A stretch of DNA of 64,000 nucleotides from Neoechinorhynchus agilis (Eukaryota; Animalia; Acanthocephala), in assembly GCA_051530055.1 (NCBI GenBank), contig CM121342.1, forward strand, positions 7,448,691 to 7,512,690, written 5' to 3'. Under the pieces are notes generated by a model that worked only from the letters and a program-made list of their open reading frames with translations, was not told where the DNA came from and searched no databases. Below, in pieces: positions 22,575 to 50,314 of the stretch; the stretch's first letter is position 1; each line of letters opens with the position of its first letter. The position numbers and the translations under genes are program-made.

Positions 22575-24251
22575 ATGCTTTTTCCACAAAGTCCATATTT
22601 TGTACGTTTTCAAAACGATGATAAATTAGGACTACATCGAAGGTACGCAAGATTCTAATAAAATCGATGTTTTAAATATAAACTTAGTTATGGAATTGAT
22701 CTCTTTTGGTGCATTTTATGCTTTAATGCATTATTGGTAAATGGCGCGGCACGCTTCCCAAATTCAAGAAAAAATGCTTCTACGAGCAACAACGTATCTT
22801 TTATCACGACAACAACATCTTCGGTTATGCCATCAACAATCCTAAGTTCCACAATGGGAAGTACATCCACTGAGAAGACCACAACAATATCCACTAGCCC
22901 GTCAACATCTGATAGCACCACAGAGTCAACAATCGAGAGCACCACAGAGTCAACAACTGGGAGCACAACCGATAACACAACCGAAAGCACCTCCGAGAGA
23001 CCCACCGAATCAACAACCGAGAGAATTTCAGAGTCAGCCACCGAGAGTACCACCGAGTCGAAAACCGCTAGCACAACCGAGAACATAACCGAAAGCTCCT
23101 CCGAGAGACCCACCGAATCAACAACAGAGAGAACTACAGAGCCAACAGTCGAGAGTACCACCGAGTCAACAACTGGGAACACAACAACCGAGAGTACCAC
23201 AGAGTCAACAACCGAAAGCACCAATGAATCAACAACCGAGAGTACCACCGAGTCAACAACCGAGAGTACCACCGAGTCAGAAACTGGGAGCACAACCGAG
23301 AACACAGCCGAAAGCACCACCGAGAGACCCACCGAATCAACAACCGAGAGAATTTCAGAGTCAGCCACCGAGAGTACCACCGAGTCGAAAACCGCTAGCA
23401 CAACCGAGAACATAACCGAAAGCTCCTCCGAGAGACCCACCGAATCAACAACAGAGAGAACTACAGAGCCAACAGTCGAGAGTACCACCGAGTCAACAAC
23501 TGGGAACACAACAACCGAGAGTACCACAGAGTCAACAACCGAAAGCACCAATGAATCAACAACCGAGAGTACCACCGAGTCAACAACCGAGAGTACCACC
23601 GAGTCAGAAACTGGGAGCACAACCGAGAACACAGCCGAAAGCACCACCGAGAGACCCACCGAATCAACAACCGAGAGAATTTCAGAGTCAGCCACCGAGA
23701 GTACCACCGAGTCGAAAACCGCTAGCACAACCGAGAACATAACCGAAAGCTCCTCCGAGAGACCCACCGAATCAACAACAGAGAGAACTACAGAGCCAAC
23801 AGTCGAGAGTACCACCGAGTCAACAACTGGGAACACAACAACCGAGAGTACCACAGAGTCAACAACCGAAAGCACCACCGAATCAACAACCGAGAGCATC
23901 ACAGAGTCAACAACCGAGAGTACCACCGAATCAACAACCGAGAGCACTACAGAGTCAACCACTGAGAGTACCACTGAGAGTACCACCGAGTCAGCAACCG
24001 AGAGCACCACAGAACCTGCTAAGATATGTCTGTGTGGAAAAGATCACGAACCCAATTACGAGAATAATTGCAAGTCGTTCTTTTTTTGCAAAGCAAACCC
24101 GATTACTGAATTGTACTGCCCTGCTGGCCTTCGATTCGATTTTGATAAGCAAGTATGTGATCGACCATCGAATGTTGATTGCTCTGTGAAGTGTACACCG
24201 GTTTCTTCTTTATTATGGACCTTGAATCTGGAGGAAGATACATTGAAATGA
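22575..24251 (+). CDS. Mucin-like peritrophin: T/S/E stalk plus C-terminal CBM14 chitin-binding domain (exons 22575-22642, 22688-24251)
   Basis: 45-bp GT-AG intron 22643-22687, frame conserved in paralogs; ESTT repeats with 327-bp internal units; CGKDH..CKSFFFC..YCPAG.RFD...VCD...VDC six-Cys pattern. Confidence 0.9.
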
Positions 24252-24429
24252 TGTGCAATTGATTTGCAAGGTTGAATAATTGGCTGGACATTCCGAATTA
24301 ATGAAACATGAAATGTATTGCAATGTAAATTTATAATATGCTAGTTAATTACCGCTGAGCGGTTTTGCAAGGGTTTTAAAATTAAAATGGTTGTAAAAAC
24401 GGGATTGACACGACTTTATCAACGAACAA

Positions 24430-25290
24430 AGTATTTCGCATTTTGGCTATTTTGAAGGCAACGTTGATAAAAAAAGCTGAGTTGCTATTTGTGGTCTTTG
24501 GTGAAATGGAAAAAATCAGTAGTAGATTACGATCGATTGTTCATGAATCTAAAAATTTGATAAAGGAGAAACTTTTGCTTTGTTCCCTGTTCCATCGTGT
24601 TGGCCATTTCAATATGTGTATATCGACTCTTTTTATAAGTCGATAGTATTTCCGATTTTCGGTACAGAGGACGTTTGTCTTGTCGTATGATTTAGAATAG
24701 TAAAGGCGTAGTATCGCCACATCGTACAGCGTTCTTGTGTTCACGGAGACTAGTTTCTTTGAACAGCTCAATATTTCACCCACGTAGGCCATCTCGCAGT
24801 CGTTGCAGGGAATGCGGTATACCACATCAGAACTCGTTCTTTTGCAGAGGGTTTCTTTTAAAGATACGCTCGTGATAGTCGTGGTCCTCTTGTGATCTAG
24901 GCGAACGGGGATTTTGAATTTCCGAGGGTCCTGCGTATCAGATTAGAGCGAAAATCATCAATGAATTCAGATTGGATGAATACCACTGTTTGGTTTTCAA
25001 TGGGTCGACTGGATCGCAAATACCGCTCCTTATTATAAACCTGCCGTTTCGCCCAATCCGGATTGTCCCTTATTTTCAACATGATCTTAATATCATCGAT
25101 TTCACGGTTTCTTTCATTATAAATATTACAGATTTTCATGGCTTTCCGGAATAAAGACTGCTTATTTTTAAGGCTTGAGGAGAGTTGATCTTCCATGATG
25201 TGCTTTGCCAACAGATTACAGGTTTTCGGTATATGGAAGTGTTTAAACCACGACCTGTTCTCTTCACATAAACGTCTTCTTTTCACTTAC
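24430..25290 (-). mobile_element. Penelope-like 3' fragment (thumb, linker, GIY-YIG)
   Basis: SLFRKAMKICN..EIDDIKIML; MVYRIPCNDCEMAYVGEI. Confidence 0.8.
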
Positions 25291-25299
25291 GCTTTTTCT

Positions 25300-25715
25300 C
25301 TCTTTCGAGAGGTCGCGGGTCTTAATATGGCATCTATTCGGTGATACATATTGCGTCAAATTTAACTCCGATCTTGATTTACACAATCCATCCCACGCTT
25401 CTTCGGTCTCTCTCGGCGCCGCCTTCCCAATATCTCGACCCCCTCTATGCTACGTAGTACATGTCCTCTCTCGCTATTCATATCCTTATTGAACCATCGC
25501 AATCTTCTTTGAGCTTTCATTTCAATGCATCGATGAATCCTCCCTAACATCCCTCTAATATCTTTGTTTCTTTTCATATCCTTGAGTGTGAAGCTAGCTG
25601 CCCATCTCAGCATCCGCATTTCATTCGACTCTAATCAATTGAGGTCGTCTTTCCTGGTCGTCTACGTCTCTGCGGCGTACAACATTGCTGGTTTCACTAC
25701 GTTGATGATGTGTCA
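25300..25715 (-). mobile_element. RTE (BovB-like) 3' fragment
   Basis: EMRMLRWAASFTLKDMKRNKDIR..RLRWF..VLRSIEG..RRRERPKKRGMDCV. Confidence 0.8.
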
Positions 25716-27890
25716 GTTGAGCATGAGTGACTCGTTGTTCCGTAAGCCTCAGCATCCTCCAAGTCCGTTCTATGGCGCCCTCGCTAATGAGGAGAAGAGG
25801 AAGGAGTTCGATATCGAACTAGAGAATCAACCGAGCTCGATGCCAGCTGCTGAAACGGATATTGATTTTTATTACAAGTCAATCTGCGACGCAGTGACCG
25901 AAGCGGCCGAGAAAACCCTCCGAAAAATAAGGCATATAAAAGCTGCAAAGGTTATATGGCAGGAGGACTGTGAATTTATGGCAATGGCTGAGCAGATCAA
26001 AACTCTAAGAAAAAGAGGAAAACGATCTCAGGCTCGCATTGCAAGTCTTGAACTTGCCAACCTCTATAATAAAAGGCAAAAGGCCTAGATAGAGGATGCA
26101 GCTCGCGGGATCGCACAAAAGGAAGATTTTGTTCGTACCTCCTTAGCATGGAGAGCGATAAACACCCTCAAAGGAAGATTGCAAAGACAGCCAACTTTGA
26201 TTGAAGGTCCCTCCCCGGAAATCAGAAAAAAGAGAATCGCAAATTATTTTGCGGAAATTTTCAATTCGCCATTATTGTCTTTGGAAGTGAGTCCTGCACT
26301 TCCAAAATTCACAATCGTCCCAAGCACTGAGGCATACTTCACTGGACCGATTTGCGTGAAGGAAGCGATCGCCGCGGCGAAAATGATGCGTGCGGAACGT
26401 GCATCAGGCCCAGATGGGATAATGGCAGAGGTACTGAGATTTGAATCCATTTCCAGAAAAATCATACCGATAATGAATGGCATAATGAATGGTGGCTCAG
26501 TACCTCAAATCTGACAAATGGCGCATTTAACAATGATCCCCAAGAAATGCTGCTTGACAAAGGTGGAGGACTACAAAGGTATATCCTTGATGTCCAACAC
26601 GGCAAAACTTTTCAGCAGCATTTTGAGACGCCGAATTCAGCCAATCCTCAAACCGTTTCTAAGAATTGAACGGCCGAGGCACCATAGAGCACATATTGGC
26701 TTTGAGGAGGATCCTCGAGGAGGCACGAATTCATCAAACGGATGTGACGCTGGTATTTGTTGATTTCCGTCGAGCTTTCGATTCGGTAAATCGAGCGATG
26801 ATTGGCGGTATCATAAAGGAGTATGGAGTGTCGCCGATCATTGTCACATCCGTTATGGCATTATATAAAAACACTAGGTCCGCCGTAAAGACAGCTGACG
26901 GTTTGACAGAATACTTTTCCACCACTTCAGGTGTTCTGCAGGACGACACATTGGCTCCTTTCCTCTTCATCTTGGTGCTTGATTGGGCAATGAGATGGGC
27001 ACTACCGAATGATGAAGATGGATTTCTTCTGTTGAGGAAAAGAGGTCGCAGGTATCCTGAGATACGCGCCTCCTACATGGCATATGCCGATGACATCGTA
27101 TTGATGTCCTCAACGGTCGAAGGAGCTCAACGCATGCTAAATAGACTGTGCGAGAGGGCGAGTATGATTGGTCTGACCATCAACTCGAAAATAACGCAAT
27201 TCTTGACGATTCCGCATGTCGCGCATACAGTCTCTGGCGAAGGGCCGAATGGCGTTGGGCAATTAAAACAGATAGAGCGGAATGTCTATCTGGAAGCTGT
27301 CGTTCCTGAGGTGAGTGCGGATGTCAGCCGACGGAGAGCTATAACTTGAAGAGCAATGGGGCAACTTAAACCACTGTTTGACAGTGAGTCTTTGCCAGAT
27401 GAACTCCGTTCGCAGCTGTTCAGGGCTCGAATTGAGAGCATTCTCTACTACAATGCAGAGACCTGGACACTGTCACCAGCGGCGACGAGGCAGTTGGACC
27501 AAAATCATTAATCTCTCTTACGTGCGGCGTTCAAGGTCAGATGGTCAGATAAAGTGACCAACAAAGCACTGTATAAGAGAGCCGGAGTCCAACTGCCCAG
27601 TGAATACTTGCGCCGCAGACGACTGCACTTCACGGGCAATATAATTCAGTCCGAGGCATCTTGCCCACAGGTCGTGCAACATTTCCTTTTGTGAAAACCA
27701 ACGACATTGTATCGTAAAGGCAAAGGGAACTGTCGTACATACGATGACCTGATTTTACGAGACGCGAATTGCCCGCATAACAGGACTGCTGTCGTGTATT
27801 TTAGATCCCTTGCGGAGTCTAATTCTATTTGACGGGCTTATACCTACGGTGTAACGTAGGAAAGTACCGTTGCATACAATACAATACACC
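25715..27890 (+). mobile_element. 5'-truncated RTE-clade non-LTR retrotransposon with RT
   Basis: ASGPDGIMAE, IPKK..YKGISL, FVDFRRAFDSV, GVLQDDTLAPFLF, YADDIVL; 3' end in short (tacaa)n repeats at about 27872-27887. Confidence 0.92.
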
Positions 27891-28250
27891 ACTACTCCGT
27901 CAATTTGATCATAAATTTCTTCGTTGATTTGAAAGGCATTCTTAGAGGTGTACCATGTGATGAGCTCGATCCACTCGATCCTCGTGAGACAAGGAGAGGT
28001 GTGTCTTTCAGTTAGAAGGTTCGATGCCATTTATGTCTAATTGGTAAATAAAGAATTGACATCAGAAGTCAGGAATCTATGCTCAGATCGATTATTCCTC
28101 CTGATTTCAGTAGCGAATGAAGGTCTATCTTTTATGTAGGAACGATTCTTATCACGACATTTTCGGATCCATTGGTTGATCTTCTTTGCTATGTTGTGTC
28201 AAAATGAAGTGGAACTAGCGAAAAACGGTCTCAGAGTCAGCACAGATTTG
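27890..28250 (-). mobile_element. Penelope-like RT fragment
   Basis: FLTSDVNSLFTN and NAFQINEEIYDQIDGV. Confidence 0.7.
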
Positions 28251-28840
28251 TGGATTTTTGGCAAAGTGTATAGAAAATCTGGGAATGCAAAAGCAAAGCA
28301 AATCTTAGAATATTGAAATTGATATGCAATGATTTTAGAATATCGCTTTAAACTTATACTTATGACCGTGAACTAAAGTGCGGGGCATTGTTAGTAAAGC
28401 ATTCCGCTGAGATTTTTACGTTCAAATTACCATTTGACATGCGCTTTTGCTGGACAATTTTGGGCTTTGTTGTCTCGACTTAACCTTCGTAAACTATATT
28501 TTACTCTAAAATTTCATAAAATCTGACATTTGTCACGAATACCAAAAAAAGGTTTCAAAATCCAAGATCGTGAACTACGAAACTGCCACTTTCATTCCGG
28601 CTACACACAAACATGGTCCTAGTTTCGGGATTCTGGACGAAAAGCCAGACGATGACTAATAATGATTGTTTCTTAGAGTAGCTATTTACAACGTTCCTCC
28701 CGGGATTTCTACTTTAACTTGAAGATGAAAACTAAAGTGAATCAGCAAGGAGCTCTTACACAGTGAGTTCATCTTAATCATTTTCTTTGATAATCCTACA
28801 AAGCGAAAGGATCGACAAACTTTTTGTCAGGCAGCACGAA

Positions 28841-29764
28841 ATGCTTTTTCCACAAAGTCCATATTTTGTACGTTTTCAAAACGATGATAAATTAGGACTA
28901 CATCGAAGGTACGCAAGATTCTAATAAAATCGATGTTTTAAATATAAACTTAGTTATGGAATTGATCTCTTTTGGTGCATTTTATGCTTTAATGCATTAT
29001 TGGTAAATGGCGCGGCACGCTTCCCAAATTCAAGAAAAAATGCTTCTACGAGCAACAACGTATCTTTTATCACGACCACAACATCTTCGGTTATGCCATC
29101 AACAATCCTAAGTTCCACAATGGGAAGTACATCCACTGAGAAGACCACAACAATATCCACTAGACAGTCAACATCTGATAGCACCACAGAGTCAACAATC
29201 GAGAGCACCACAGAGTCAACAACTGGGAGCACAACCGAGAACACAACCGAAAGCACCTCCGAGAGACCCATCGAATCAACAACAGAGAGAATTACAAAGT
29301 CAGCCACCGAGAGTACCACCGAGTCAACAACTGGGAGCACAACAACCGAGAGTGCCACAGAGTCAACAAGCGAAAGCACCACAGAATCAACAACCGAGAG
29401 CATCACAGAGTCAACAACCGAGAGTACCACCGAGTCAACAACTGGGAGCACAACAACCGAGAGTACCACAGAGTCAACAACCGAAAGCACCACAAGAAGA
29501 AGAATGAAACGCATGACAAAGTCAACAACCAAGCGCCCCACAGAGCTAATAACAACAGAAAACACCACCGATTCAACAACTACGAGGCCCAGAAGACGAG
29601 GAATGAAACGCAGACCAAAGTTACCAACCACGCGTCCAACAAGTTCGATCGCTGACTTAGCTCCGATGTTAGCAGTTGGGGCTATTGGGCTATTACTTCA
29701 TACGGGCAGAAAGTTTGTGGGTTTAACTCTAAAACCTAGGAAGTGGCTTAAACCGGGTATTTGA
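28841..29764 (+). CDS. Mucin paralog with a basic/hydrophobic C-terminus instead of CBM14 (exons 28841-28908, 28954-29764)
   Basis: Same exon 1, 45-bp intron and N-terminus as 22575; after the ESTT stalk come RRRMKRM, RPRRRGMKRRPK and LAPMLAVGAIGLLLH. Confidence 0.8.
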
Positions 29765-30134
29765 GCGAGTTAAATTCTGGATTTGATACTATCCTTTAGG
29801 CGGGCTTTTTTGGGGCGTGATTAAGCAAATCGCCTTGAACGAGGGTGTAAATGTAAAATCGCAAATCAACCGGATAAGATTATGCGAATGTGCAAGAATT
29901 TCGACGCAAAAGAGATTGAAGGTTTGTGAGAGGGAAAGAACAATGAAAAAAATGCATTTTCGTTCAACCTTTAGCCGGAATGAAATTTCGTTTGAGGGCA
30001 AGGAAACATTGAAGAAAGCAGGGTCAATGAATTAATATAAATGTTATTTTTATCAGCAATTTGTTTGTCTTTTCATCTTCAAGAAATAAAAACTTCACCA
30101 GTTTGTGGACAAACGCCTTAACGATTATAAATGT

Positions 30135-30407
30135 TTATTGGAATTCAGTAGGGGTCCTAGTTGACTTTTCCGATAGCCTCTTAACCAAGAACATGGATGA
30201 GTCGAGAAATCGATCAACGCAGTTCTTTAAACACGATTCGTTCTTGCCTGATAATCGATTTGGAAATGCTGCATTGTTAGAAAAGCAAGTTTCAATGCAA
30301 AGGTCAGAGAGATTTTGAATTGCTTGTTTAAAACGTTGCCGTGTTGTTTCTTCCTCAATCATTGCTGCCAAATCGCTATCGATTGATTGGGATCCATTAG
30401 ACGACAT
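30135..30407 (-). CDS. TIMM8: Mitochondrial small Tim chaperone, Tim8/DDP1-like
   Basis: 90 aa; twin CX3C (CIETC, CLKNC), then VDRFLDSSMFLVKRL. Confidence 0.92.
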   Translation of the reverse strand: MSSNGSQSIDSDLAAMIEEETTRQRFKQAIQNLSDLCIETCFSNNAAFPNRLSGKNESCLKNCVDRFLDSSMFLVKRLSEKSTRTPTEFQ

Positions 30408-30496
30408 TTTTATCCCACATCGAGTGTGAGAAATTCTTCCTAAAAAGTGCTAAGAAATCCGAAAGAATCATGAATGTGGTAGCTCATGACGAAACG

Positions 30497-30506
30497 ATGA
30501 CGTCAT
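30497..30506. promoter_or_regulatory. Perfect CRE/ATF palindrome ATGACGTCAT about 90 bp upstream of TIM8
   Basis: Exact TGACGTCA in a CpG-richer patch between divergently oriented genes. Confidence 0.4.
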
Positions 30507-30693
30507 AACGAAGGGCGTTGACTTCGCGCCCGACGCATTTTTTTACCAATTCTCGATTTTTCAGTCGTGTTCCATAATTCGCATGTTGAAATATCGACAA
30601 CATCGCGAGAAAATCTTAATTCAACAGAATACTTTCAGAAATTATTCATTATAGTTTCAGTTTCTATTAGCGATGTTTGATTCAGAGATAGAT

Positions 30694-30890
30694 TTGGAAT
30701 TATTGTTTAGAAGTCTACATCCGCGGTAAATGATTATTTCGATTAAAGACTTTTCGAACATCGTCGGGTTCATCATCAGTCCGTTTGCAATTTTTTTAAC
30801 TGTCAATACGTTGAAGAAAAAAACTTGCAAAGAAACTGATGATGAACCAGACGAGGTTCGAAACGTCTTTAATCGAAATAATCATTTTCC
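30694..30890. mobile_element. Palindromic MITE-like element, right arm truncated
   Basis: ggtaaatgattatttcgattaaagac..ttcatcatcagt is mirrored by actgatgatgaacc..tttaatcgaaataatcattttcc; related to 54668-54886. Confidence 0.8.
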
Positions 30891-31114
30891 GTTTATGATT
30901 CTGCAGTTAGCACATATTTATAATTTCATCAAAAATATTTTCGCTTCAATGTTGAACCTCAATCATAGTCAATTTTAAATAACTTCGAGATAGAAGTGAA
31001 GGTTAGAAAGCTGTTTTTCGCAAGTGTTTACGACGACTGAACGGAGAACGCCAACGAAAAGGCCGAAAATTTTGAAGATAAATCTATTTCTGAATCAAAC
31101 ATCGCTGATTGAAA

Positions 31115-32890
31115 CTGAGAATATTTTCTATCCGGGATTTTGATAACCAAACTACCAACTCCAGCATTCCGAAGGATTTTCTCTGGATGAATAATCGAAA
31201 TTTTAAGATAAATCGGAAACATTGTTTTAATAACAAAGTTTAATCATCCAGAGAAAATCTTAATTCAATAGAATATTTTCAATCTGGGATTTTGATAATT
31301 AAAATGCCAACTCTGGCATTCCGAAGAATTTTTGTCTCGATTAGTAATCGAAATGTTATGATAAATCGGAAACATTGTTTTAATAACAAACTTTAATCAC
31401 CGCAAGAAAATTTTAAAATCAATAGAATATTTTCTATCTGGGATTTTTATAACCAAACTGCCAACTTTGGCATTCCGAAGGATTTTGCCTCAGTGAATAA
31501 TCGAAGTGTTATGATAAATCGGAAACATTGTTTTAATAACAAAGTTTAATCACCGCGAGAAAATCTTAATTCAATAGAATATTTTCAATCTGGGATTTTG
31601 ATAATTAAAATGCCAACTCTGGCATTCCGAAGAATTTTTGTCTCGATTAGTAATCGAAATGTTATGATAAATCGGAAACATTGTTTTAATAACAAACTTT
31701 AATCACCGCAAGAAAATTTTAAAATCAATAGAATATTTTCTATCTGGGATTTTTATAACCAAACTGCCAACTTTGGCATTCCGAAGGATTTTGCCTCGGT
31801 GAATAATCGAAATGTTATGATAAATCGGAAACATTGTTTTAATAACAAATTTAATCACCGCATTTTAAATCAATAGAATATTTTCTTGGTTTTTTGCTCT
31901 ATATAATTTGATAAATCGACTTGTTTTAATAACAAAGTTTAATCACCGCGAGAAAATCTTAATTCAATAGAATATTTTCAATCTGGGATTTTGATAATTA
32001 AAATGCCAACTCTGGCATTCCGAAGAATTTTTGTCTCGATTAGTAATCGAAATGTTATGATAAATCGGAAACATTGTTTTAATAACAAACTTTAATCACC
32101 GCAAAATTTTTTTAAAATCAATAGAATATTTTCCATCTGAGATTTTTATAACCAAAATGCCAACTTTGGCATTCCGAAGGATTTTGTCTCGATTAGTAAT
32201 CAAAATGTTGATAAATCGGAAACATTGTTTTAATAACAAAGTTTAATCATCCAGAGAAAATCTTAATTCAATAGAATATTTTCAATCTGGGATTTTGATA
32301 ATTAAAATGCCAACTCTGGCATTCCGAAGAATTTTTGTCCCGATTAGTAATCGAAATGTTATGATAAATCGGAAACATTGTTTTAATAACAAACTTTAAT
32401 CACCGCAAAATTTTTTTAAAATCAATAGAATATTTTCCATCTGAGATTTTTATAACCAAAATGCCAACTTTGGCATTCCGAAGGATTTTGTCTCGATTAG
32501 TAATCAAAATGTTGTGATAAATCGGAAACATTGTTTCAATAACAAAGTTTAATCATCCAGAGAAAATCTTAATTCAATAGAATATTTTCAATCTGGGATT
32601 TTGATAATTAAAATGCCAACTCTGGCATTCCGAAGAATTTTTGTCCCGATTAGTAATCGAAATGTTATGATAAATCGGAAACATTGTTTTAACAACAAAG
32701 TTTAATCCTCATATTTTCTATCTGAGATTTTTATAACCAAAATGCCAACTTTGGCATTCCGAAGGATTTTGTCTCGATTAGTAATCGAAATGTTATGATA
32801 AATCGGAAACATTGTTTTAATAACAAAGTTTAATCATCGCGAGAAAATATTAATTCAATAGAATATTTTCTATCTGGGATTTTTATAACC
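31115..32890. repeat. Satellite with about 152-bp monomers arranged as an A/B dimer (about 304 bp)
   Basis: gataaatcggaaacattgttttaataac recurs; variants aatcttaattc..actctggc..gaagaattt and tttaaaatc..actttggc..gaaggattt alternate. Confidence 0.95.
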
Positions 32891-32973
32891 ATATCACCAT
32901 TTACAAGGTTTATCCCTTTACTTGAGCTTCCTTAAACAGTTTTTCTTAATTTCTAAACTCACTATAAATAAAG

Positions 32974-37050: not shown

Positions 37051-37052
37051 AA

Positions 37053-37418: not shown

Positions 37419-37493
37419 ATTTTTAAAATTATCCTTTATCGCCAAAAAGTTCGATGAGTTTTCTTTTATAAAAAAATAACGTTGCTTCTTTGT

Positions 37494-39783: not shown

Positions 39784-40019
39784 TTTCGATGGCTGTTTCC
39801 ATCGATAGTAAAAAATAAATAGTTTGGCATTCATTTTGTTTTTAATGGTAATTTGAAAATGATAACGAACACATTAAAAGTTCCCAAAGAAGCAGAAATT
39901 TTTACTGTTCTCAATTTAAATTCAATCAGCGCTTTTTATATATGGAAAATTATCGACAATGGACCATAAGGAACAATTTGTTAAATTTTTTTGTATTTTT
40001 ATGGGGTTTTTAGGATGAA

Positions 40020-40430
40020 CGCTAAATTCTAAAATACCAATAATTTATTTCTACACATAAAAAAGCACCTAAAAGGCGACCCGGTAAATCGCATTGATTA
40101 CAAAATTTATCTTTATAACTTCGATACGAATTTTAGAAATAAAAAACTCGAAATAATGTCTAAGTAACCGAAATCTTTTCTATTATCTCATTGAAAGAAG
40201 GTTTTATTTTCTACTACAGATATTTTTTCATAAAACATCAAAGAGATTGCAACTTTGATAAATCTCAAACATCGATAAATCCGATTTTTTTTAGGTTGAA
40301 CGCAAAGTAGCAAAATTCTAAAATACCAATAATTTATTCCTACACATAAAAAAGCACCTAAAAAACGACCCGGTAAATCGCATTGATTACCAAATTCATC
40401 TTTATAACTTCGATACGAATTTTTGAACGC
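40020..40430 (-). repeat. Inverted copy (about 1.5 units) of the 288-bp satellite at 57957-58690
   Basis: aaattctaaaataccaataatttatt recurs about 289 bp apart and is the reverse complement of the 58-kb unit. Confidence 0.88.
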
Positions 40431-40730
40431 TAAAATTAAAAGCGTTCATATATTGTTTTTAGGTAATTCTTTAATTTTTTACCTGGTAAAGATAGCATGA
40501 TAAAATCGTTATTTAAAACCATCAAATTCATAAATTGGGCAGGAAATGCATTATTCGACTATTTCCTCTTGAGTCAAATGGAAACATTAGTAAATTATGA
40601 AATATCGCGACTAACAAGTTCGTTGACGGTACTGAAACGTTAAGCTGCTTTCTTTTTTAAAGGTCCGAGGAAAGGATGTTCTATAAACACAGGATCAATA
40701 GAACCGGATTGCCAGTAAAAACTAAAGTTC

Positions 40731-41096
40731 GCATAAGGATATTGCCGATCCCTCCCCCGCCGCTCGTCGATTAGATTCTGACATTGAATGATGCAAAATT
40801 TCTTCGAAGAATCTCTCCGATTTTGCCACCGTCGTTATTCGTCCGGATCCTTTATTTATCCCGTGTTTTTCGGTCAATTAATTCATTCTTCAAAATATTC
40901 ATCATTCCACGTCGTTGAATGCATTAATTACACAACCGGGAAATGCTAAACTTTTCATGGTACTTTTTAATTCAATGTCTTATCAATCATTATCCTTTGC
41001 TTTTTTCGAAGATGTCCGAAGTGCTTTCGAATGAAACATAAAGTTGTGTTTAATTTTTTGTCTAATCTAGTTACTCGGTTCGTCGTTTTTTATCAT
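40731..41096 (+). repeat. Dispersed repeat of about 365 bp, copy 2
   Basis: Near-identical to 37053-37418. Confidence 0.9.
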
Positions 41097-41399
41097 CTAG
41101 TTACTCGGTTCGTCGCTTTTTATCAGTCTTACTTAGGTTTAGGTCTAACCCCACAAATACTAAGTTCATTTTAAACTCTCGTTATTTGAGGTTGGTGGTG
41201 ACAAAAATGATCAGCTGAAATAGAAGATATTCATTTGTGAAACACGATGTCAACTTGGAAATCCACTTGTTAAAGAAGATTTGTTAACGCTTCTCAAGGG
41301 TTAATTTTAATATAACTATTTTCAAGAGTACTTTTTGAACGAACCAAAACGCTATATAAATTTTTAAGACATTTTACAATTTTGATTGTTAATCGACAT

Positions 41400-42940
41400 G
41401 GAAAACTCAATGTCGCGTAATTTTTTTGTTAAAAAAATGGCGTTCCGAACAATGATCAAAATAATCAAGATTCTATTGATCGGTGGCCTCCGGATGACCG
41501 TGGAGGGGAATAGATGGATGAGGATTATAAAGTTAGCGACCGGGAAGGTAATAGGGAAGTTATGTTGAAGGATAACGTCGTGGTGGAGGTTGTTTTAGAG
41601 AGTAATGGGTTGTCGGCTCCCTCCCACCACGGTGAATGTTTAGTAGATTCAGTATTTAAAGGTGTTTTTCGGTTGCCGAGAAGGAGAGATGATTTTGTTT
41701 TGAAGATCAATAGAGGATTTAGGAGACTTGACGACAAGTGGTTTGACGAAGATATATTTTTCGGAAGGTTTGAAACCTAATAACTTTAGTGGTGACAGAA
41801 GATATCAAATTAAAAAATGTTTTACTACTAAGTGGGCGGTGCTAATGATTTTCCTGGAAGTTGAAGGAATGAAACTATTTGAGGAGCTCCTTCGCAGTAA
41901 AAATATTAGGTATAAAAATATATCAAGGAGAGTATCAGTTTTGGTGTTAAACCCTCCGCCAAACATGTCGAAAGATGAGTTTATATTATTCCAAAACACT
42001 TTTGGTCTTGTGCCAATTAAATATTTGAAAAGGAGTCCTTCTTCGAAGCCTTATGCTTTACTTGTATCGGGCTCGCAGGATGAGGTAGACAAGGTCCAGG
42101 GGAGATATTTTGGGTTTATGGCATATTGGATTAATTTCGTATCCCGCCAATCGGAGCCGAGTGGTGACCCTCACAACACAATTAATTCCAGTACTTTGTG
42201 TTCAGTTAAACGTGCAAATTGTTTAGGAAATCATGGGGCATATCGACGCACTTGTATGGCAGCGCTGAGTTATTGGAAGATGGCGAAGCCGGGTAATTAT
42301 ATGAAGGGTTATAGTTGGTTTAAACGGAAAGTGGAAAAGGAGTTGGGGAAAAATGGTCTTCAAGGAGAGGATAAGGTTATGAAAAATAATTTTCAGGTAG
42401 AAGATAAGGTTAAGGAGGGGTTGGAAATGCTTAAAGAGAGGGCTGGTAGTTTAAATAAGAAATTTGAGAAGGATAAAATAATTTGTGATTTATTGAATCA
42501 AGAATGCGGAAAATAATAAGGAGGTTTATGAGGTAATTAAAAAGGTTTAGGAGAAATTGATGATGGGTAAGCGGTGTGCTTCAGGTGAAAAAGAGGATGA
42601 ACCTGGTAATAAGGAGGATGGGTTGTCATCGCATGGCCCGATTAGAAAGATGGATAGGCATGTTAATGGTCGGCATAAAGGCCGTTTTCGCTAAATATCT
42701 TAAAATGCTTAATGTTAATTTACTTACTTGTATGATGAATAATTTATATTAATTTCTTATAATGTGTCTAGAGCCTTGGGTTTGTAGGAGAATATTTGTT
42801 TAGCGGGTCGACTAGATGATGCGGACGTTATTTGCTTTCAAGAAACGGGAAATATGAATCTTGTTAATAGAGGTGATTTGATATCCATTGTGTATTGTTT
42901 GTATGCATCTTATAAAATGAATGAGGATAAAGCGGCAGCG
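41400..42940 (+). mobile_element. Third LINE 5' half (gag-like ORF1 plus APE start), different family
   Basis: CSVKRANCLGNHGAYRRTC degenerate knuckle in ORF 41728-42516; YNVSRALG..DADVICFQETG at about 42760-42850. Confidence 0.6.
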
Positions 42941-43544
42941 ATAATCCTGACTTCAATTCCAAGTTTTATTATCTTTTGGATCGCTGATTTCAATTTCAAA
43001 AATATTCTTACAAGGATTGACTATGGGCATTAAGTACGGAAGGGAACCTTTAGCTTTCATTGCGATGTGCAAGGCGCAAGTTGGGACTATAAATCTATAT
43101 CTGACGTTATTTCTATGATTGAAGTACCCAACCCTCATTCAAGGAGGTTGGATTCGGAAAGTTTACTACTGGGATTCGCATTGAACTGCAAAATTATTCG
43201 TTGCGGTATCGAAATGTCGATACAGTTCGAAAGATGATGTGCGTGAAGGCGTTATTAAATACAGATTTGTTCCCAAAGGCGGTTGAATTTATTGCACAAT
43301 TTGACCCGAACATCCTGTACTTTATTGGTTAACGATTACTGCGGAAACACAATTAACGAAGAATTTTCTTTGAAACAGTATCGAACCAATGCAGATGGAA
43401 TCTGATTTCTGGCCGATAAACGGGCTTAGAGAATGGCTGGCCAGTGCGATGATGTTGTCATGTTTTTATCGGTCGTGATCGAGTTGCATAGTAAACTCGA
43501 CCGCCATTAGGCACAAATCCGTATTTAATCACATTATCAAACAT

Positions 43545-44030
43545 ATTCAAAATCATTTGTCTGACGGCATCGTTCATTCCGCAACGCACCCCGTTGAACC
43601 ATCGGGATCCCATGGTCTCGTCTGTCGGCAATCAGGCGGAAGGTACTCGCGACACGTCGAAGTGAACGCAATTCTTAGCCGCACCTTGAATACTGGTCAA
43701 TGCGTCCAACATCCTAGAGCCGAGCAATCGCTGTATTCCAGTGGCGAGGAAAGGTAAATGCATTCTCTGGGACGTCACGCTCACAGCAGTCGAGATCATT
43801 ATTTTGTTCGGTTTGGCGTCGAGACACTCGGGTCGTTTAGTACCACGGCACAGGATCTGGTCAATCAATTGTCCAAGAGATTGAGACGAATCACTGGCGA
43901 TAAGAGATCAGGAGCATTCCTCCCACAAAACATAAGCATGGCTGTGCAACGGGGGGGGGACGCTTCATCCGCCTTTTCGACTGTTACACCAGGACGACTC
44001 CGGAGTGATCCAGAGCGGTGGTGTCAATGA
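43545..44030 (+). mobile_element. CRE-like C-terminal RLE fragment
   Basis: GSHGLVCRQSGGRYSRHVEVNAIL; FGVETLGSF..FLPQNISMAVQRG. Confidence 0.85.
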
Positions 44031-44539
44031 TTTTTGGCTCCGATATTCTGAAGGTTATGTTAATAAGCGTCCGTATATTTTACTTTAATTTCTTTAAGTA
44101 TTCTCACAAAGAGTTCCATGCCCCTTCTGAACTTGTAAAAAATATTAAACAAGCCCATCGAGTACTTATTTGTTTCAGAATCTGAAACTATCTGTGTTTG
44201 TTTTAGTTTCTAGGAACCATGAAATCCCGAAAAAATCTCTTGACCAAATCATAACAGGAATTATTCATCATATTATCTCTTTTTTTTGCGAATGAAAAAA
44301 TTCTCTTTTAATCATGGGATTCTCGGAATTACATCCTTCGACAAACGATCTTTTAACAACTGAGTACTCGGGTAGAGGACAGGCAACGCGTTAACATCTA
44401 TAACCTTCCTAGTTGTTAAAAAATCGTTTATCGAGGATTTAATTTCGAGACTCCCAAGATTAAAAGAGAATTTTGGTATTCGCATAAAAAGCGAGAATAT
44501 GATGAATAATTCCAGTTACTTTTTCGGCCGAATCATTCC

Positions 44540-45480
44540 GTCCAATTTCCATTCTGCCCCCTCTTTCATAAATCATCGAAAAATGTTTTTAATCTCGCCT
44601 TCGTTCACTTCTTAACGACAATTTATCGCCTCTACAATTCGGCTTCCGGCCTAAATTTTCTACAAGCGACGCCGTACGTTGCATTTATGACATGCTACTC
44701 CGTTACCTCGACAATAATCCCTCCTACTTCACCCCCCTCATTCAACTTGATTTATCTAAAGCCTTCGACTTAGTTGACCATTCACTCCTTCTTCGGGCCT
44801 GCTCCGATTTTTGTCTCAACTTGTGGCAGATCCGCTGGCTAGAATCTTATCTTTACAATCGCAAACAATACATTCACTGCCGTTCTACCTCCGCTATCAG
44901 CCTAGCCCTCAACAAAGGCCCTCTCACTCTAAACTCTTCTTATACGCCGACGATCTCATCCTCATCACCCATTCACCACCCCAGCTCTCCATCTCCTTAA
45001 GCTCTAACGAAATCAAACGCATAAAAGATTTCTGCACCAATCACAAACTTTACCTTAATTTCTCTAAATGCTTCGAAATGATTCCTTCACTCTCCCACAA
45101 CCCCACATCTTCCCCCGAGATTCTGAATGACATCCTACGAGTAAACTTCCTAAGAATTCTGGGTATCCAATTTCAATAAAATTTGGAATGGGACTCGCAA
45201 ATCACTCTCGCCGTCAAGAACAACGCCTTTAAAATTTATCTCTTCAAACGCCTCCGACATGTAGGAATCCCTTCAATCGATCTCTACAAATTTTACTTCT
45301 ACTTTATTTTACCTTCCCTCACCTACGGTAATCCTGTCTTTTACAACCTTTCCAAATCGCCAATCCGTCGTCTTGAAATTCTTCACAAAGGAGCATCTAA
45401 AATTTGCACAACTGACTTTCCCCTAACACACCCCCTGCGGTCCAATGCGAGTCACAGTAGTAGATTTCCCGGAACCTTCC
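44540..45480 (+). mobile_element. L2/CR1-like RT 3' fragment
   Basis: IQLDLSKAFDLVDHSLLL, LYADDLIL, LRILGIQF, FILPSLTYG. Confidence 0.85.
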
Positions 45481-46007
45481 TCAGGAAATGAGGTTTTGGT
45501 ATTACATTTTGTAGAAGTGACGTCCGATTTAAATTTAGGTTCTTAATTTACTTCCTGCATAACATTTTCCACTATTAATTGAGGTGATGAGCAAAATGTT
45601 GGTACTTGCCATAATCATTTACCGGGTGTAGACTAAAACAATAATTCCCATTATATAATTGCGTTCAATATCATCGGAGATAATTCCGAGAGCCTAATTA
45701 CACCTCTTCTAAGCAATGGGAAATTGACTAAATTATGTCATAAGAAAAATTATTACAAATCGCGTTTGTCATCTTCGTACTGAGCTCACGAATATTTTAA
45801 AATAATTCGAATCGCTATAGATAACGAAGCGTAAACATTATTGCGATATATTTTAAACTTGTTCATATTTTAGAAACAATAAAGCGAGCTTTAAATCTTA
45901 CTTTTCAAACTGGCGAATGCAAGGTTGCGTTTGAGTTGTTCATTTTTTCGGAAAGATTTTTATTCACAAAATAAAGGCTTATTTAATTTTTGTGGTGAAC
46001 AAATATT

Positions 46008-46487
46008 TCAGAAAATTCGACAAGGATGCATTCGTCCCATTAAAATCGACTGTCTAACTTTATGTTCTAAGATGTATTTCCAATGAGGTTGAAGTTTCCG
46101 CTGCAGTTCATAAAGGTCCGCATCCCAAAAAGAGGGAGCATAAGAACTAGCAACATTAAACGAAGAAGCATCAAGCTTTTGATTTGGATCGACTGAATAG
46201 AAGATATGATCACTGCATGCAGTTGTAATTATGTAATCTACCATAACGCAGAAAATCGTAGGTTCCAGGTCTTGTCCAATCTTCATGTTAATACACGACC
46301 TACGTTTAATCCTTAGCTTATTACCACATTGGTCCACATTACGGGATGAATCATATAAATTTTCCTTGAGGACGTCGTAATCAAAACAATCATTGTTCAT
46401 CGTTGTAGAAGACGAAGATCTTCGATGTGTATTTAGAATGGCTAAATCTACGATCGATATGAATCCAAGAAGAAGTAGGAGAATCAT
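46008..46487 (-). CDS. Secreted Cys-rich orphan protein, about 159 aa (copy 1)
   Basis: MILLLLLGFISIVDLA signal; 6 Cys; translation identical to 50845-51324. Confidence 0.7.
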   Translation of the reverse strand: MILLLLLGFISIVDLAILNTHRRSSSSTTMNNDCFDYDVLKENLYDSSRNVDQCGNKLRIKRRSCINMKIGQDLEPTIFCVMVDYIITTACSDHIFYSVDPNQKLDASSFNVASSYAPSFWDADLYELQRKLQPHWKYILEHKVRQSILMGRMHPCRIF

Positions 46488-46628
46488 TGTTGTTTTGTGC
46501 ACCTTTTTACTATGCGATGCGCCATCTTAAATATAAAATTCGTGCTCATTTAACCACAAAAGACTGTCAAGGTTTTTTGGATAATGCACATTTGGGTTTA
46601 TGGACTGAAGCGACGAAAATAGCTTGAA

Positions 46629-47343
46629 GCATTCAAGACTCATTGACGAAACGGACAAGGTGACTTATCGCATTTTTTCAGTGTGAAGTTTGCGTCTTTT
46701 TCATCGAACAATAAAACTCTTTAAAACTTAAAATACTGTCGCATCTATTTAACTGGGGAATTTTTGGACCATTTGACTGAAACGACGAAAATGCCTTAAA
46801 GCATTCAAGACTCATTGACGAAACGGACAAGGTGACTTATCGCATTTTTTCAGTGTGAAGTTTGCGTCTTTTTCATCGAACAATAAAACCCTTTAAAACT
46901 TAAAATACTGTCACGTCTATTTAACTGGGGAATTTTTGGACCATTTGACTGAAACGACGAAAATGCCTTAAAGCATTCAAGACTCATTGACGAAACGGAC
47001 AAGGTGACTTATCGCATTTTTTCAGTGTGAAGTTTGCGTCTTTTTCATCGAACAATAAAACTCTTTAAAACTTAAAATACTGTCACGTCTATTTAACTGG
47101 GGAATTTTTGGACCATTTGACTGAAACGACGAAAATACCTTGAAACATTCAAGACTCATTGACGAAACGGACAAGGTGACTTATCGCATTTTCGGTATGA
47201 AGTTTGCACTTTTTCATCGAACAATAAACCCATTAAAACTTAAAATACTGTCACGTCTATTTAACTGGGGCATTTTTGGACCATTTGACTGAAACGACGA
47301 AAATACCTTTAAGCATTCAAGACTCATTGGCGAAACGGACAAG
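46629..47343. repeat. Tandem satellite, 172-bp unit, about 4.2 copies
   Basis: gcattcaagactcattgacgaaacgg at 46629, 46801, 46973 and onward. Confidence 0.95.
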
Positions 47344-47344
47344 G

Positions 47345-47700
47345 TGTCGAAATTCCTCGATAGTTTCAACATATGGATCTATCTTCCTTTTGAATATTGA
47401 TATGATGACTGCATTCAGTAAGAGTGGTATCTTCAGAGTCCCATATTTTGAGAATGATCAGGTGGAGCTTTGTTCGGACTTCATTTCCTCCTTACTTGAA
47501 CAGTAGAGCGGGTATGTCGTCTCTTCAGAAAGGATTTATTGTTCTTGAGTTGTCTGATGGCTCGTCTCAATTTATCAAGAGTAGGCGTGGAATTTCATTC
47601 GAAATTGCTGGAGGAGACTCAAAGAATCTGGGTATGCTGCTGGTGATGAGTCGAGGAGAGTGCAGAAGTGGTTCCTCTAGCGGTCGCGGATTCCTGTGGA
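47345..47700 (-). mobile_element. Degenerate LINE RT fragment
   Basis: LHLIILKIWDSE..INIQKEDRSIC*NYRGIS, resembling the IFKKGD..C.NYRGIS motif. Confidence 0.55.
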
Positions 47701-49492
47701 GTATGGCCAAAAATGGCATGAGCACCAGCGAAGAAATTCCTAATCTGGTGGCGGTCAGCATGTTGTAGTAGTTTATTGGACTTAACGACTTACCAGTGAT
47801 TTTGAATTTGGCGAATGTGATTTTGAGTGAGTGCTTTCGTTTAAAACAAAAATTAAGACCACCAGAGAACGAACAGACATTGCGCGCATACAACGTCGAG
47901 TTTTTATTCGAGAATGACGTCACTTTTAATTATTACGCGCGCGAAATTTTTTTTATGTCGGTGTCCACTTCGAACGTTGGTTTGGAACGTAATAAAGAAA
48001 ACCAATTAATGGAAAACTAACAGCTTCACAAGTCCGTGTCACGATCCTTCTAAGCTGCACAACTTGAATGCTTTGAGGGCCCGGTCGATTTTACGTGCCC
48101 AGAACTGATGCAGTTTGCTCAGAGATCTGAGAAAGCTTTATATAAAATCAAGACGTTGTTCCGCTGGACGGCCTCTGAAGTAAAAACCAGGCCGGATATA
48201 GCCCACGTATTCCAGATTAATTTAACATCTTTAGTATTTATTGCTTTAGCCTGTGTCACTTTTAAAAGCTTCTTGGGTTTATTCACATCGTCTTAAGAGC
48301 TACAATTTTTGATAAACGTGTACCCAAGAATTTCTACTTTATTTTGAACGATCACCGCATCAAGCGTTTAATATTCTTTCCAAAATTTTATTATCTTGCG
48401 TTCCCCTAAAGTGAAACGAGAGTTTAAAACTTACTTAGTCTTTGATGTTATGGTCTAACCTTATTTGAGGTTGGTATTTATGTAAAAAAATAAGCAACGA
48501 CGATGAAATAGCTATTGTCATGTTTCTGCCTTACTAAACTAATTATTTTTCTGCCCTTTCCCTCGATCAGCTTTCTTTTAAATTTTGTCATATCGATTTT
48601 GGAACTAAACTGAATAATTTACTGTTCATGTAGCTTCTTATGCATTTTCAAAGTGTAATCTTGCAAAACCATCTATAATAATTGTACATATTAAAGGAAT
48701 GATTTCATTGTGGCCAAAACCCCAACGAAAATTCTAGAAATATCACATGTAAATAATTCGGTCTAAAAAGTCATTATAGCTATCATTTTCGAAAAGGTGC
48801 TGCCGCCTCCAACTAGAAATGTAGTTTGCATTACCAAAAGTGGGTTTCAAGGTAATCACAACGGGTTTGCGCATGTCTAGCTTTAATCTATTGGCTTCGC
48901 ATCGATTGCAATGCCATTCACTACTCAGAAATGTAGTGATCATAATCCCGGGTAGAAGATATTAAATTGAGATACTCCGCGAAAGCCTGTAAAGAAGACT
49001 TAAATAACGACTGATAATACGAAACTTCCTCGCGAAATATCTCATTTAAATGAAATAGTTTTTATCCAAGATTATGATCACCACATCTCAAACTCTATCA
49101 TCCCGAAGGATTTTCTCTCGGTGACAATTTCCACTATTCTTTGCATATTTACAAATTTTCGACTGTACAGGTTTTTCGAAAGAGCGCGCTGCTTTATCAG
49201 TGGAATCGCATTGGCCGAATGGACGCGATCATTTGCAATAAGGTATGAGTTTCATAGTAATCTAATTTGCATTCACTCTTCGATCATATTATTTGTTCGC
49301 CGATAAATTCGTGTCAATCTCGTAATCGGAACAGATCTTGACATATATAAAAACGATTTTAATTTTAAAACCCTTGCAAAACCGCTCAGCGGTGATTAAC
49401 TAGCATATTATAAATTTACACTGCAATACATTTCATGTTTCATTAATTCGGAATGTCCAGCCATTTTTTCAACCTTGCAAATCAATTGCACA

Positions 49493-50314
49493 TCATTTCA
49501 ATGTATCTTCCTCCAGATTCAAGGTCCATAATAAAGAAGAAACCGGTGTACACTTCACAGAGCAATCAACATTCGATGGTCGATCACATACTTGCTTATC
49601 AAAATCGAATCGATTACCAGCAGGGCAGTACAATTCAGTAATCGGGTTTGCTTTGCAAAAAAAGAACGACTTGCAATTATTCTCGTAATTGGGTTCGTGA
49701 TCTTTTCCACACAGACATATCTTAGCAGGTTCTGTGGTGCTCTCGGTTGCTGACTCGGTGGTACTCTCAGTGGTTGACATTGTAGTGCTCTCGGTTGTTG
49801 ATTCGGTGGTACTCTCGGTTGTTGACTCTGCTGTGCTTTCGGTCGCTGACTCTGTGATGCTCTCGGTTGTTGACTCAGTGGTGCTATCAGTGGTTGACTC
49901 TGTAGTGCTCTCGGTTGTTGGATCTGTGGTGCTCTCGATTGTTGACTCTGTGGTGCTATCAGATGTGGACTGGCTAGTGGATATTGTTGTGGTCTTCTCA
50001 GTGGATGTACTTCCCGTTATGGAACTTAGGATTGTTGATTGCGTGACTGAAGGTGTTGTGGTCGTGATAAAAGATACGTTGTTGCTCGTAGAAGCATTTA
50101 TTCTTGAATTTGTGAAAGCAACGGATAGTACGGAGGCTACCACAGCAATTGCTAATAAAGCATTGCAGCATAAAATGAAACAGAAAAGACCCATTCGATT
50201 TCTAGATTAGGATTTCAAACATCGATTTTATTAGAACCTTGCGTACCTTCGTTTCTGTTTTACTTCATCTTCGTTTCGAAAGCGTACAAAATATGGACTT
50301 TGTGGAAAAAGCAT
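49493..50314 (-). CDS. Mucin-like peritrophin with N-terminal TM anchor and C-terminal CBM14 (exons 50314-50247, 50201-49493)
   Basis: 45-bp GT-AG intron 50246-50202; MLFPQSPYFVRFRNEDEVKQKRRNR, then LFCFILCCNALLAIAVVASVLSVAF; short ESTT stalk; CBM14 differs from the 22.6-kb copy by one residue. Confidence 0.9.

Follow-up and report, generated by a model that had tools for sequence, protein, structure and literature searches.

Glycosylated low-complexity proteins carrying CBM14 chitin-binding domains, namely the chondroitin proteoglycans CPG-1 and CPG-2 of C. elegans and the protein CBD-1, organise or attach to the chitin layer of the nematode eggshell. Insect group III chitinases of the Cht7 type combine an N-terminal membrane anchor with a C-terminal CBM14. 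Mucin-like proteins bearing CBM14 are also common in insects and elsewhere, and peritrophin-A domains are present in 9 of the 23 mucins or mucin-related proteins that have been characterised in Drosophila (PMC2515642). Here, a family of related genes was analysed in the genome of Neoechinorhynchus agilis, an eoacanthocephalan parasite of fish (PMC12690905). The family lies within 64,000 nucleotides (nt) of contig CM121342.1 (assembly GCA_051530055.1, positions 7,448,691 to 7,512,690), hereafter the window, in which adding 7,448,690 to a position gives the chromosome coordinate. This placement agrees with an exact match of the leucine-rich repeat gene of the window and with 17,740 nt that align to the chromosome with 0 mismatches. 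On balance, the locus is best read as a lineage-specific and partly decayed cluster for acidic, proline-poor, Thr/Ser/Glu-rich CBM14 glycoproteins, which would be derived from a chitinase tail and for which the egg shell is the likeliest target.

Gene models, C-terminal domain, and repeat stalks

Five related loci were recovered in the window by a BLASTN search with the 50-kb copy as query and by self-comparison of the window (Table 1), in agreement with the initial annotation of this DNA, which had described them as a modular mucin/chitin-binding family. A search for the exon-1 start motif located it at four positions and no others, namely 2634, 22575, and 28841 (forward strand) and 50314 (reverse strand). 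The 68-nt exon 1 is common to four of the five loci, the one at 20.8 kb consisting of repeats only. A 45-nt intron (GTACGC...TAG) is present in three copies, those at 22.6, 28.8, and 50 kb, which are here termed B22, C28, and D50, respectively. Splicing out these 45 nt brings exon 1 into frame with the Thr/Ser/Glu-rich mucin frame in all three, giving products of 543, 292, and 258 amino acids (aa) for B22, C28, and D50. Both the four shared first exons and the three shared introns had been proposed previously. The intron holds a branch-point-like CTAAT motif, and its size and acceptor match those of an N. agilis comparison locus with a chitinase (GC content of 38.8%, equal to that of the window), at which introns are mostly 40-55 nt long and five of six end in TAG. 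An A occupies position -3 relative to the exon-1 ATG. The GenBank call at B22 (22575-24251, 543 aa) agrees with the exon-1 ATG model only, since 45 nt must be removed to obtain 543 aa over this span. The call at D50 ends at 49493 with 258 aa, which is the length of the spliced model. At C28 the call (29093-29764, 223 aa) starts from an internal Met and contains no exon 1, and no gene is called at the 2.6-kb or 20.8-kb locus. At the sequence level, the models with exon 1 and the 45-nt intron hold, and the GenBank calls at B22 and D50 agree with them in coordinates or length. B22 and D50 both read as intact genes.

The C-terminal domain scored 32.7 bits against Pfam CBM_14 (PF01607) as an isolated C-terminus and 27.3 bits within the full D50 protein, both above the gathering cut-off of 22.1. 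It was tested against the six-cysteine CBM14 register, C-x9-24-C-x5-C-x8-14-C-x11-16-C-x6-8-C with aromatics before Cys3 and after the PxG motif, and conforms to it as CGKDHEPNYENNC-KSFFFC-KANPITELYC-PAGLRFDFDKQVC-DRPSNVDC; in an alignment of 19 sequences, none of the six cysteine columns varies. An extra pair, CxCG...CxxC, makes it an 8-Cys variant, which is common to the N. agilis chitinases. A sequence search of the PDB matched the CBM14 of a Trichuris suis chitinase (6G9C) and, more weakly, a squid beak chitin-binding protein, an Ostrinia chitinase, and tachycitin. An AlphaFold2 model of the domain gave a mean predicted local distance difference test (pLDDT) of 78.9, with core blocks of 91-95. 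The top 14 Foldseek matches in the PDB were all CBM14 structures, including Avr4, the CBM14 of CHIT1, tachycitin, Der p 23, and Blo t 12; the small size of the domain keeps the E-values weak, at 0.0085 or worse. The earlier assignment to CBM14 is hence supported by the Pfam score and by the agreement of PDB and Foldseek matches, and the model indicates a tachycitin-like fold. Between B22 and D50 the domain differs at three adjacent nt that change one residue (N vs L), exactly the single difference reported before.

Homologues were searched for in protein collections that exclude the window's own proteins. The full D50 protein with its repeats gave low-complexity matches only, a repeat-free profile of the N-terminus and CBM14 gave no match in a word-indexed search, and a precomputed gene table assigns no Pfam family to these genes. 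Look-ups of exact proteins, made for the D50 ORF from Met26, the Tim10 ORF, the 164-aa ORF, a gag-like ORF, and a 143-aa ORF of the window, likewise gave no match in these collections. An exhaustive HMMER search of 1.84 billion representative proteins listed 150 matches, among which the best single-domain CBM14 matches included the N. agilis GH18 chitinases and P0241 (UniParc UPI00079FB2EA). The full signature, CxCG followed by EPN, was found among these 150 only in the N. agilis GH18 chitinases, KAL7670420, and P0241. Profile positions 1-48, which cover the N-terminal module, formed the best match of none of the 150, all hits being at the CBM14 level, and this module looks lineage-specific. 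The family CBM14 shares 52% identity with that of the N. agilis chitinases, in which a Thr/Pro-rich linker precedes the domain. It is probably a paralogue of this linker and CBM14 tail that was recruited from there onto a new 5′ exon pair, with expansion of the linker. KAL7670420 (104 aa; locus L001, 5377-5910, reverse strand) is an inverted partial copy of the linker and CBM14 of the adjoining GH18 chitinase (6001-7797, forward strand). Its last 80 residues are 100% identical to this neighbour, which shows that the module gets duplicated on its own.

The stalks between the N-terminal module and the CBM14 are 370, 107, and 79 aa long in B22, C28, and D50, respectively, a 4.7-fold range that is close to the four-fold variation noted initially. 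They consist of 39-43% Thr, 21-25% Ser, 19-22% Glu, and 0.9-2.4% Pro, with Thr and Ser together making up 60-68%, and the stalk accounts for 68% of B22 and 31% of D50. Tandem Ser/Thr-rich repeats thus form a large share of the protein as in mucins, but the repeats do not show the proline of mucin repeats. Proline-free repeat proteins have been classified as "mucin-related" (PMC2515642), and by the criteria of that study the stalks are mucin-related rather than mucin. The B22 stalk is composed of a 327-nt higher-order repeat present 3.4 times at 95% identity.

Identity between B22 and D50 changes sharply along the gene. It is 41% far upstream, about 90% in the conserved 5′ block (more so away from the gapped 5′ edge), 95% in nt 1-41 of exon 1, 67% in nt 42-68, 84% in the intron, 63% in the hydrophobic segment, 93% in the unique Ser/Thr part, 99% in the CBM14, and 96% in the 3′ untranslated region (UTR). 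The high-identity stretch extends from a TATA-like CTATTTA to approximately 10 nt past ATTAAA and looks like one transcription unit that was homogenised at both ends; if so, exon 1 would lie inside the mRNA. Codons 13-23 differ between the two genes by 10 nonsynonymous and 1 synonymous changes and codons 24-53 by 15 and 9, counts that are too low, in too mosaic a history, to support a claim of selection.

C28 has an N-terminus identical to that of B22. The two copies are 93.5% identical over 1.1 kb, and retroelement insertions separate them. Its 107-aa stalk passes into basic degenerate repeats and then into a unique tail that contains no CBM14, and neither AATAAA nor ATTAAA was found within 320 nt of its stop. 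These degenerate repeats, the non-membrane tail, and the missing poly(A) signal lead us to read C28 as a truncated copy in which the CBM14 was lost and which is probably a pseudogene or on the way to becoming one. The last repeat units (29495-29641) are strongly basic (TTRRRMKRMTKSTTKRPTE..., TTRPRRRGMKRRPK) although the ancestral TTES repeat is acidic, and no simple G-to-A bias explains them. The C28 C-terminus was also considered as a membrane or glycosylphosphatidylinositol anchor; this was rejected, as the core spans 11-14 residues, the best 19-mer has a dG of about +5, and 24 mostly basic residues follow. The "switched C-termini" of the initial annotation therefore stand only insofar as C28 ends differently, being the decayed tail of a single truncated copy and not an alternative module. 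The two remaining loci are pseudogene fragments. In the 2.6-kb copy a 17-nt deletion takes out the splice donor, and its repeats are short and degenerate, of a TECTxxRFTES type, with stops. The 20.8-kb fragment has neither 5′ block nor exon 1, and is flanked by a 634-bp duplicated element on its 5′ side and a long interspersed nuclear element (LINE) on its 3′ side. The distinct TECTxxRFTES-type repeat is common to both fragments, which may be pieces of one broken gene. The family as a whole appears to have evolved by expansion and contraction of repeat arrays, homogenisation of both ends, and truncation of copies in a transposon-rich region.

Targeting segments and competing explanations

The D50 protein begins with MLFPQSPYFVRFRNEDEVKQKRRNRM, followed by the 25-residue hydrophobic segment LFCFILCCNALLAIAVVASVLSVAF. 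In B22 and C28 an in-frame 18-nt deletion within this segment leaves LFWCILCFNALLVNG, with a 13-residue core. The segments were scored by a simple 19-residue sum on the Hessa biological hydrophobicity scale and by the Kyte-Doolittle mean of the same 19 residues. The best 19-mer of D50 gave about -2.0 kcal/mol (Kyte-Doolittle 2.63), that of B22 and C28 gave +3.7 kcal/mol (1.72), and the signal peptides of the N. agilis chitinases gave +1.8 and +1.9 kcal/mol (2.16 and 1.84). Net charges counted over 15 residues on each side were +3 before and +1 after the D50 segment, and -1 before and +3 after the core of B22 and C28. A type II membrane span needs at least about 19 residues with a favourable insertion energy and a more positive N-terminal (cytosolic) flank; D50 has both, and B22 and C28 have neither. 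Sequence, hydrophobicity, and flank charge hence agree with the basic N-terminal flank and 25-residue segment originally described for the 50-kb copy. The shortening of the segment in the other two copies is equally clear from the 18-nt deletion and the 13-residue core, and by its flank charges this segment resembles a degraded targeting signal more than a tuned one.

D50 appears to carry the only convincing targeting signal of the family, and could physically remain as a type II anchor. The SVA/F sequence after its segment fits the -3/-1 cleavage rule, and translation from an in-frame Met26, which lies 7 nt past the proposed acceptor with the hydrophobic stretch directly after it, would give an ordinary 26-residue signal peptide. 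Between these fates, cleavage at SVA/F seems somewhat the more probable, and retention of D50 as a type II membrane protein is put forward tentatively. The Met26 codon aligns without indels to ATT in B22 and C28, so both need the exon-1 ATG for any signal sequence. A negative flank before the core and a positive one after it are unfavourable for exporting the C-terminal part. The short segment of B22 and C28 reads best as drift or partial decay of a signal rather than a designed secreted variant, and these proteins may be secreted or simply impaired.

Among the competing explanations, the one that survives best, although we still regard it as rather unlikely, holds that D50 alone is functional and that B22 and C28 are young pseudogenes, in which the targeting signal was impaired when the Met26 codon, six codons of the hydrophobic segment, and basic residues were lost. 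That their long frames persist would be due only to the several open frames of the TTES repeats and to recent copying of the 3′ end from D50. The ATG-to-ATT change and the 18-nt deletion, together with the unfavourable flank charges and weak hydrophobic score, are what it would predict. The antisense strand of the B22 array is likewise open for 440 codons, so an open frame carries little weight here. C28 clearly has no CBM14 or poly(A) signal, and the 98-99% identity of CBM14 and 3′UTR fits gene conversion rather than long-term constraint. B22, however, retains an intact exon-1 ATG, splice sites, and frame, and corresponds to a 543-aa GenBank gene. Its deletion stays in frame, its core is near the chitinase signal peptides in hydrophobicity, and its array was recently amplified (327-nt units, 95%), although amplification needs no selection.

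Still less probable is the functional tunable system envisaged in the initial annotation, in which D50 would be tethered in type II orientation and the others secreted, with variable stalks and end modules serving as a coat or host interface. The contrast between the D50 segment, with its length, favourable insertion score, and net-positive N-flank (about +3 to +4 against +1), and the 13-residue core of B22 and C28 is consistent with it. So are the GenBank models that take in exon 1 for B22 and D50, the 4.7-fold stalk variation through recent repeat amplification, and the otherwise unrelated P0241, in which a CBM14 of 55% identity occurs together with a Thr-rich region and, at the N-terminus, a membrane segment preceded by basic residues. 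On the other side, the SVA/F motif and Met26 would make an ordinary signal peptide of the D50 segment, and the flank charges of B22 and C28 are reversed for C-terminal export. Nothing was found that supports a designed, tunable tethered/secreted system. The alternative C-terminus is a decayed tail, and two of the five loci are pseudogene fragments.

To a similarly small extent we credit the view that exon 1 is non-coding (promoter or 5′UTR) and that D50, translated from Met26, is a plain secreted mucin-like CBM14 protein with an approximately 26-residue signal peptide. The placement of Met26 just behind the acceptor, with the hydrophobic stretch and SVA/F directly after it, argues for this. 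Within exon 1, nt 1-41 are conserved at the nucleotide level like the upstream non-coding block, nt 42-68 show the 10 nonsynonymous and 1 synonymous changes, and an upstream ATG with a short open reading frame (ORF) precedes exon 1 in all copies that have it. Against it stand the exon-1 ATG with its A at -3, which in each of two diverged lineages is in frame across a 45-nt intron typical of the species, and the GenBank models at B22 and D50 that use this ATG. Moreover, if the high-identity block is a transcription unit, the exon-1 AUG would be met before Met26. Finally, the idea that the copies are haplotype duplicates fails, as they lie on one chromosome-level scaffold and differ in structure.

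The preferred reading, a lineage-specific and partly decayed cluster of CBM14 glycoproteins, has several points weighing against it as well. The second half of exon 1, with its excess of nonsynonymous changes, appears to show no protein-level constraint, and pN/pS is approximately 0.7 over the N-terminal 104-110 codons, where the mosaic history clouds selection. The CBM14 and 3′UTR are near-identical through recent exchange between B22 and D50, so selection is not measurable there. The BRAKER2 models at these loci may be ab initio, and exon 1 and the intron are unused in the model for C28. The chitinase-tail origin draws solely on the nearest-paralogue relation at 52% identity, and the egg-shell role is argued by analogy. 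As to the annotation itself, it was made with BRAKER2 on the repeat-masked assembly and with RNA-seq of 74 specimens (PMC12690905).

Coordinates and surroundings of the five loci

Table 1. Positions of the family loci, their parts, and retroelement remnants in the window.
Feature	Position	Strand	Remark
2.6-kb locus: 5′ block, intact exon 1 (2634-2701), degenerate repeats with stops	2478-2912	+	BLASTN; putative pseudogene fragment
20.8-kb locus: repeats only, 60-nt TESTTESATEWTTDRF-type unit, several in-frame stops	20802-21585	+	BLASTN; putative pseudogene fragment
22.6-kb locus (B22)	22414-24392	+	BLASTN
B22 conserved 5′ block: TATA-like CTATTTA, short upstream ORF, possible 47-nt 5′UTR intron	22414-22574	+	
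B22 exon 1, 68 nt, MLFPQSPYFVRFQNDDKLGLHR	22575-22642	+	GenBank start at 22575
B22 45-nt intron, GTACGC...CTTAG	22643-22687	+	species-typical size, TAG acceptor
B22 exon 2: hydrophobic core, unique Ser/Thr part, stalk, CBM14, stop	22688-24251	+	
B22 short hydrophobic core	22701-22739	+	
B22 repeat stalk, 24-nt TTESTTES units	22902-24013	+	
B22 CBM14, 8-Cys variant (CxCG...EPN...C...CxxC)	24027-24194	+	Pfam 32.7 bits
B22 3′UTR, ATTAAA at 24381	24252-24392	+	homology to D50 stops ~10 nt beyond ATTAAA
28.8-kb locus (C28)	28680-29641	+	BLASTN
C28 conserved 5′ block	28680-28840	+	
C28 gene: exon 1 28841-28908, intron 28909-28953, exon 2 28954-29764	28841-29764	+	
50-kb locus (D50)	50584-49352	-	BLASTN
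D50 conserved 5′ block; upstream ORF closed by TGA after 8 codons	50315-50475	-	
D50 exon 1, basic N-terminal flank, MLFPQSPYFVRFRNEDEVKQKR	50247-50314	-	
D50 45-nt intron	50202-50246	-	38/45 nt identical to B22
D50 exon 2: Met26, hydrophobic segment, unique Ser/Thr part, stalk, CBM14, stop	49493-50201	-	
D50 in-frame Met26	50194-50192	-	
D50 25-residue hydrophobic segment	~50191-50114	-	
D50 repeat stalk, 24 nt x 10, 79 aa	49731-49971	-	
D50 CBM14	49550-49717	-	
D50 3′UTR, ATTAAA at 49363	49352-49492	-	
Retroelement remnants	3100-4800, 24541-24825 (-), 59700-60525; also 25500-27400, ~21600-22300		

The conserved 5′ block of B22 contains an upstream ATG (MKTKVNQQ..., 22459-22543), which has equivalents in the other three exon-1 copies. 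Behind it come a GTGAGT that matches the donor consensus and what may be a 47-nt intron with AAAG at its end. Through this intron the upstream ORF would be in frame with exon 1 in B22 and C28; in D50 and the 2.6-kb copy a TGA closes it. An upstream coding exon was rejected on account of these TGA codons, and the element is treated as an upstream ORF or a 5′UTR intron. The block was also considered as a spliced-leader-like RNA gene, which was dropped after an Rfam search of the window gave no match.

Repeated elements surround several of the loci. The 634-bp element is located at 1436-2069 and 20170-20803 in copies of 99.5% identity, one upstream of the 2.6-kb fragment and the other abutting the first repeat of the 20.8-kb fragment. 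A 937-bp inverted repeat (45690-46626 and 50706-51642, 99.5% identical, 4,079 nt between arms) encloses D50, the sole minus-strand member of the family, whose 5′ block lies about 120 nt from the right arm. Both arms contain one and the same 164-aa ORF, which starts with a signal-like sequence and matches no Pfam family. The D50 segment may have been inverted by recombination between these arms, or its orientation may be an assembly artefact. The window also contains remnants of Penelope-like retroelements, in which GIY-YIG endonuclease motifs are present, and LINE reverse-transcriptase/endonuclease fragments. A piece at 3032-3477 is 77-94% identical to DNA within the range of a P-type ATPase gene at locus L001, which lies on this chromosome at a distance of 4 Mb.

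Elsewhere in the window, a 193-bp satellite (9713-12432, 14.3 copies, 96% identity) lies directly beside an annotated collagen gene (8875-9705), and a 153-bp satellite in 304-306-bp dimers occupies 31118-32891 with approximately 12 monomers. An intact 90-aa ORF of the Tim10/DDP small-Tim type (30135-30407, reverse strand; Pfam 56.5 bits) is not among the GenBank gene calls and is probably a missed gene. The window further contains a gene for a 673-aa secreted leucine-rich repeat protein (5719-7740), a fragment of a two-pore-type K+ channel (55011-55721), and an endonuclease IV gene of the Apn1 type (62366-63360), for which the best relatives in the databases reach only about 50% identity and come from scattered taxa.

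Proposed role and comparison with known systems

In the mechanism we propose, the N-terminal hydrophobic segment would take the protein into the endoplasmic reticulum with its N-terminus cytosolic. The stalk is predicted to become N- and O-glycosylated, which would make it an extended acidic rod, and the disulfide-bonded CBM14 at its far end is predicted to bind chitin. Such a protein would act as a hydrated, acidic, glycosylated spacer or linker whose tip is attached to the chitin layer of the egg shell, which is our likeliest guess for the target by analogy with other animals. Acanthocephalans have no digestive tract, so the peritrophin frame of the initial annotation, which refers to a gut matrix, does not apply; the domain family is in common, and a peritrophic-matrix role is not. 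In this phylum chitin is known from the egg envelope through older histochemistry, for which no confirming source was found in the literature searched. Among the syndermatan relatives of N. agilis, monogonont rotifers have egg shells that contain chitin, and Gene Ontology terms for chitin binding are enriched in rotifer strains capable of sex and resting eggs (PMC3701536). The chitinases that carry the 8-Cys module would be candidates for a part in hatching.

A more elaborate picture, to which we give little credence, would combine D50 as a type II tethered, chitin-tipped stalk with B22 as a released long-stalk form, the two linking the embryonic membrane to the chitin of the egg envelope. Leaky scanning between Met1 and Met26 might then add a second, cleavable form from the D50 mRNA. 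Alternatively, the stalks would provide the acanthor, after hatching, with a grip on the chitinous gut lining of the arthropod intermediate host. If D50 were indeed tethered, it would represent an uncommon membrane-anchored CBM14 mucin.

The molecular biology of acanthocephalans is almost unexplored, and the genome paper of N. agilis makes no mention of chitin or mucins (PMC12690905). The genes of this family and the two chitinases with the 8-Cys module are candidates for egg-envelope assembly and hatching, which are stages where a fish-farm pest might be targeted. Read as a chitinase-derived cluster, the locus also shows in a small space how an enzyme's linker and binding module can become a stand-alone stalk protein, and it illustrates the fast drift of targeting signals after duplication.

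Compared with known systems, the family resembles mucin-type peritrophins, invertebrate intestinal mucins, and Drosophila mucins in combining Ser/Thr-rich tandem repeats with CBM14 and in the use of the secretory pathway. It differs from mucin-type peritrophins in its single C-terminal 8-Cys CBM14, in its acidic and almost proline-free repeats, in the long N-terminal extension before the hydrophobic segment, and in an organism that has no gut or peritrophic matrix. The GH18 chitinase tails (N. agilis KAL7670419 and KAL7671029; Trichuris suis 6G9C) are among the nearest relatives of its CBM14, with 52% identity, the 8-Cys signature CxCG..EPN..CxxC, and, as in the family, a linker rich in Thr immediately in front of the domain. 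Unlike these enzymes, the family has no GH18 catalytic domain and a different N-terminus, and its linker is a repeat array of 79-370 residues of TTES type instead of the PTTQ type of the chitinases. About as close in its CBM14 as the chitinases is P0241 (55% identity, same 8-Cys signature), an N-terminally partial sequence in which a hydrophobic segment of 29-30 residues follows basic residues near the N-terminus and which also has a mucin-like region rich in Thr. Its order is membrane segment, repeated unknown domains, CBM14, and mucin region, and it has no similarity to the family beyond the CBM14. Cht7-type chitinases offer a precedent for an N-terminally anchored protein with CBM14 at the far end, although they are enzymes with two GH18 domains and no mucin stalk. 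The functional analogy that we favour is with CPG-1/CPG-2 and CBD-1 of nematodes, from which the family is set apart by the absence of detectable orthology, as well as by their several CBM14s and different glycan attachment. The family thus belongs to a known type of protein and is distinguished by a lone 8-Cys module at the C-terminus that is a paralogue of chitinase tails, by an acidic repeat with little proline, by its long extension at the N-terminus, and by its occurrence in an organism without a gut.

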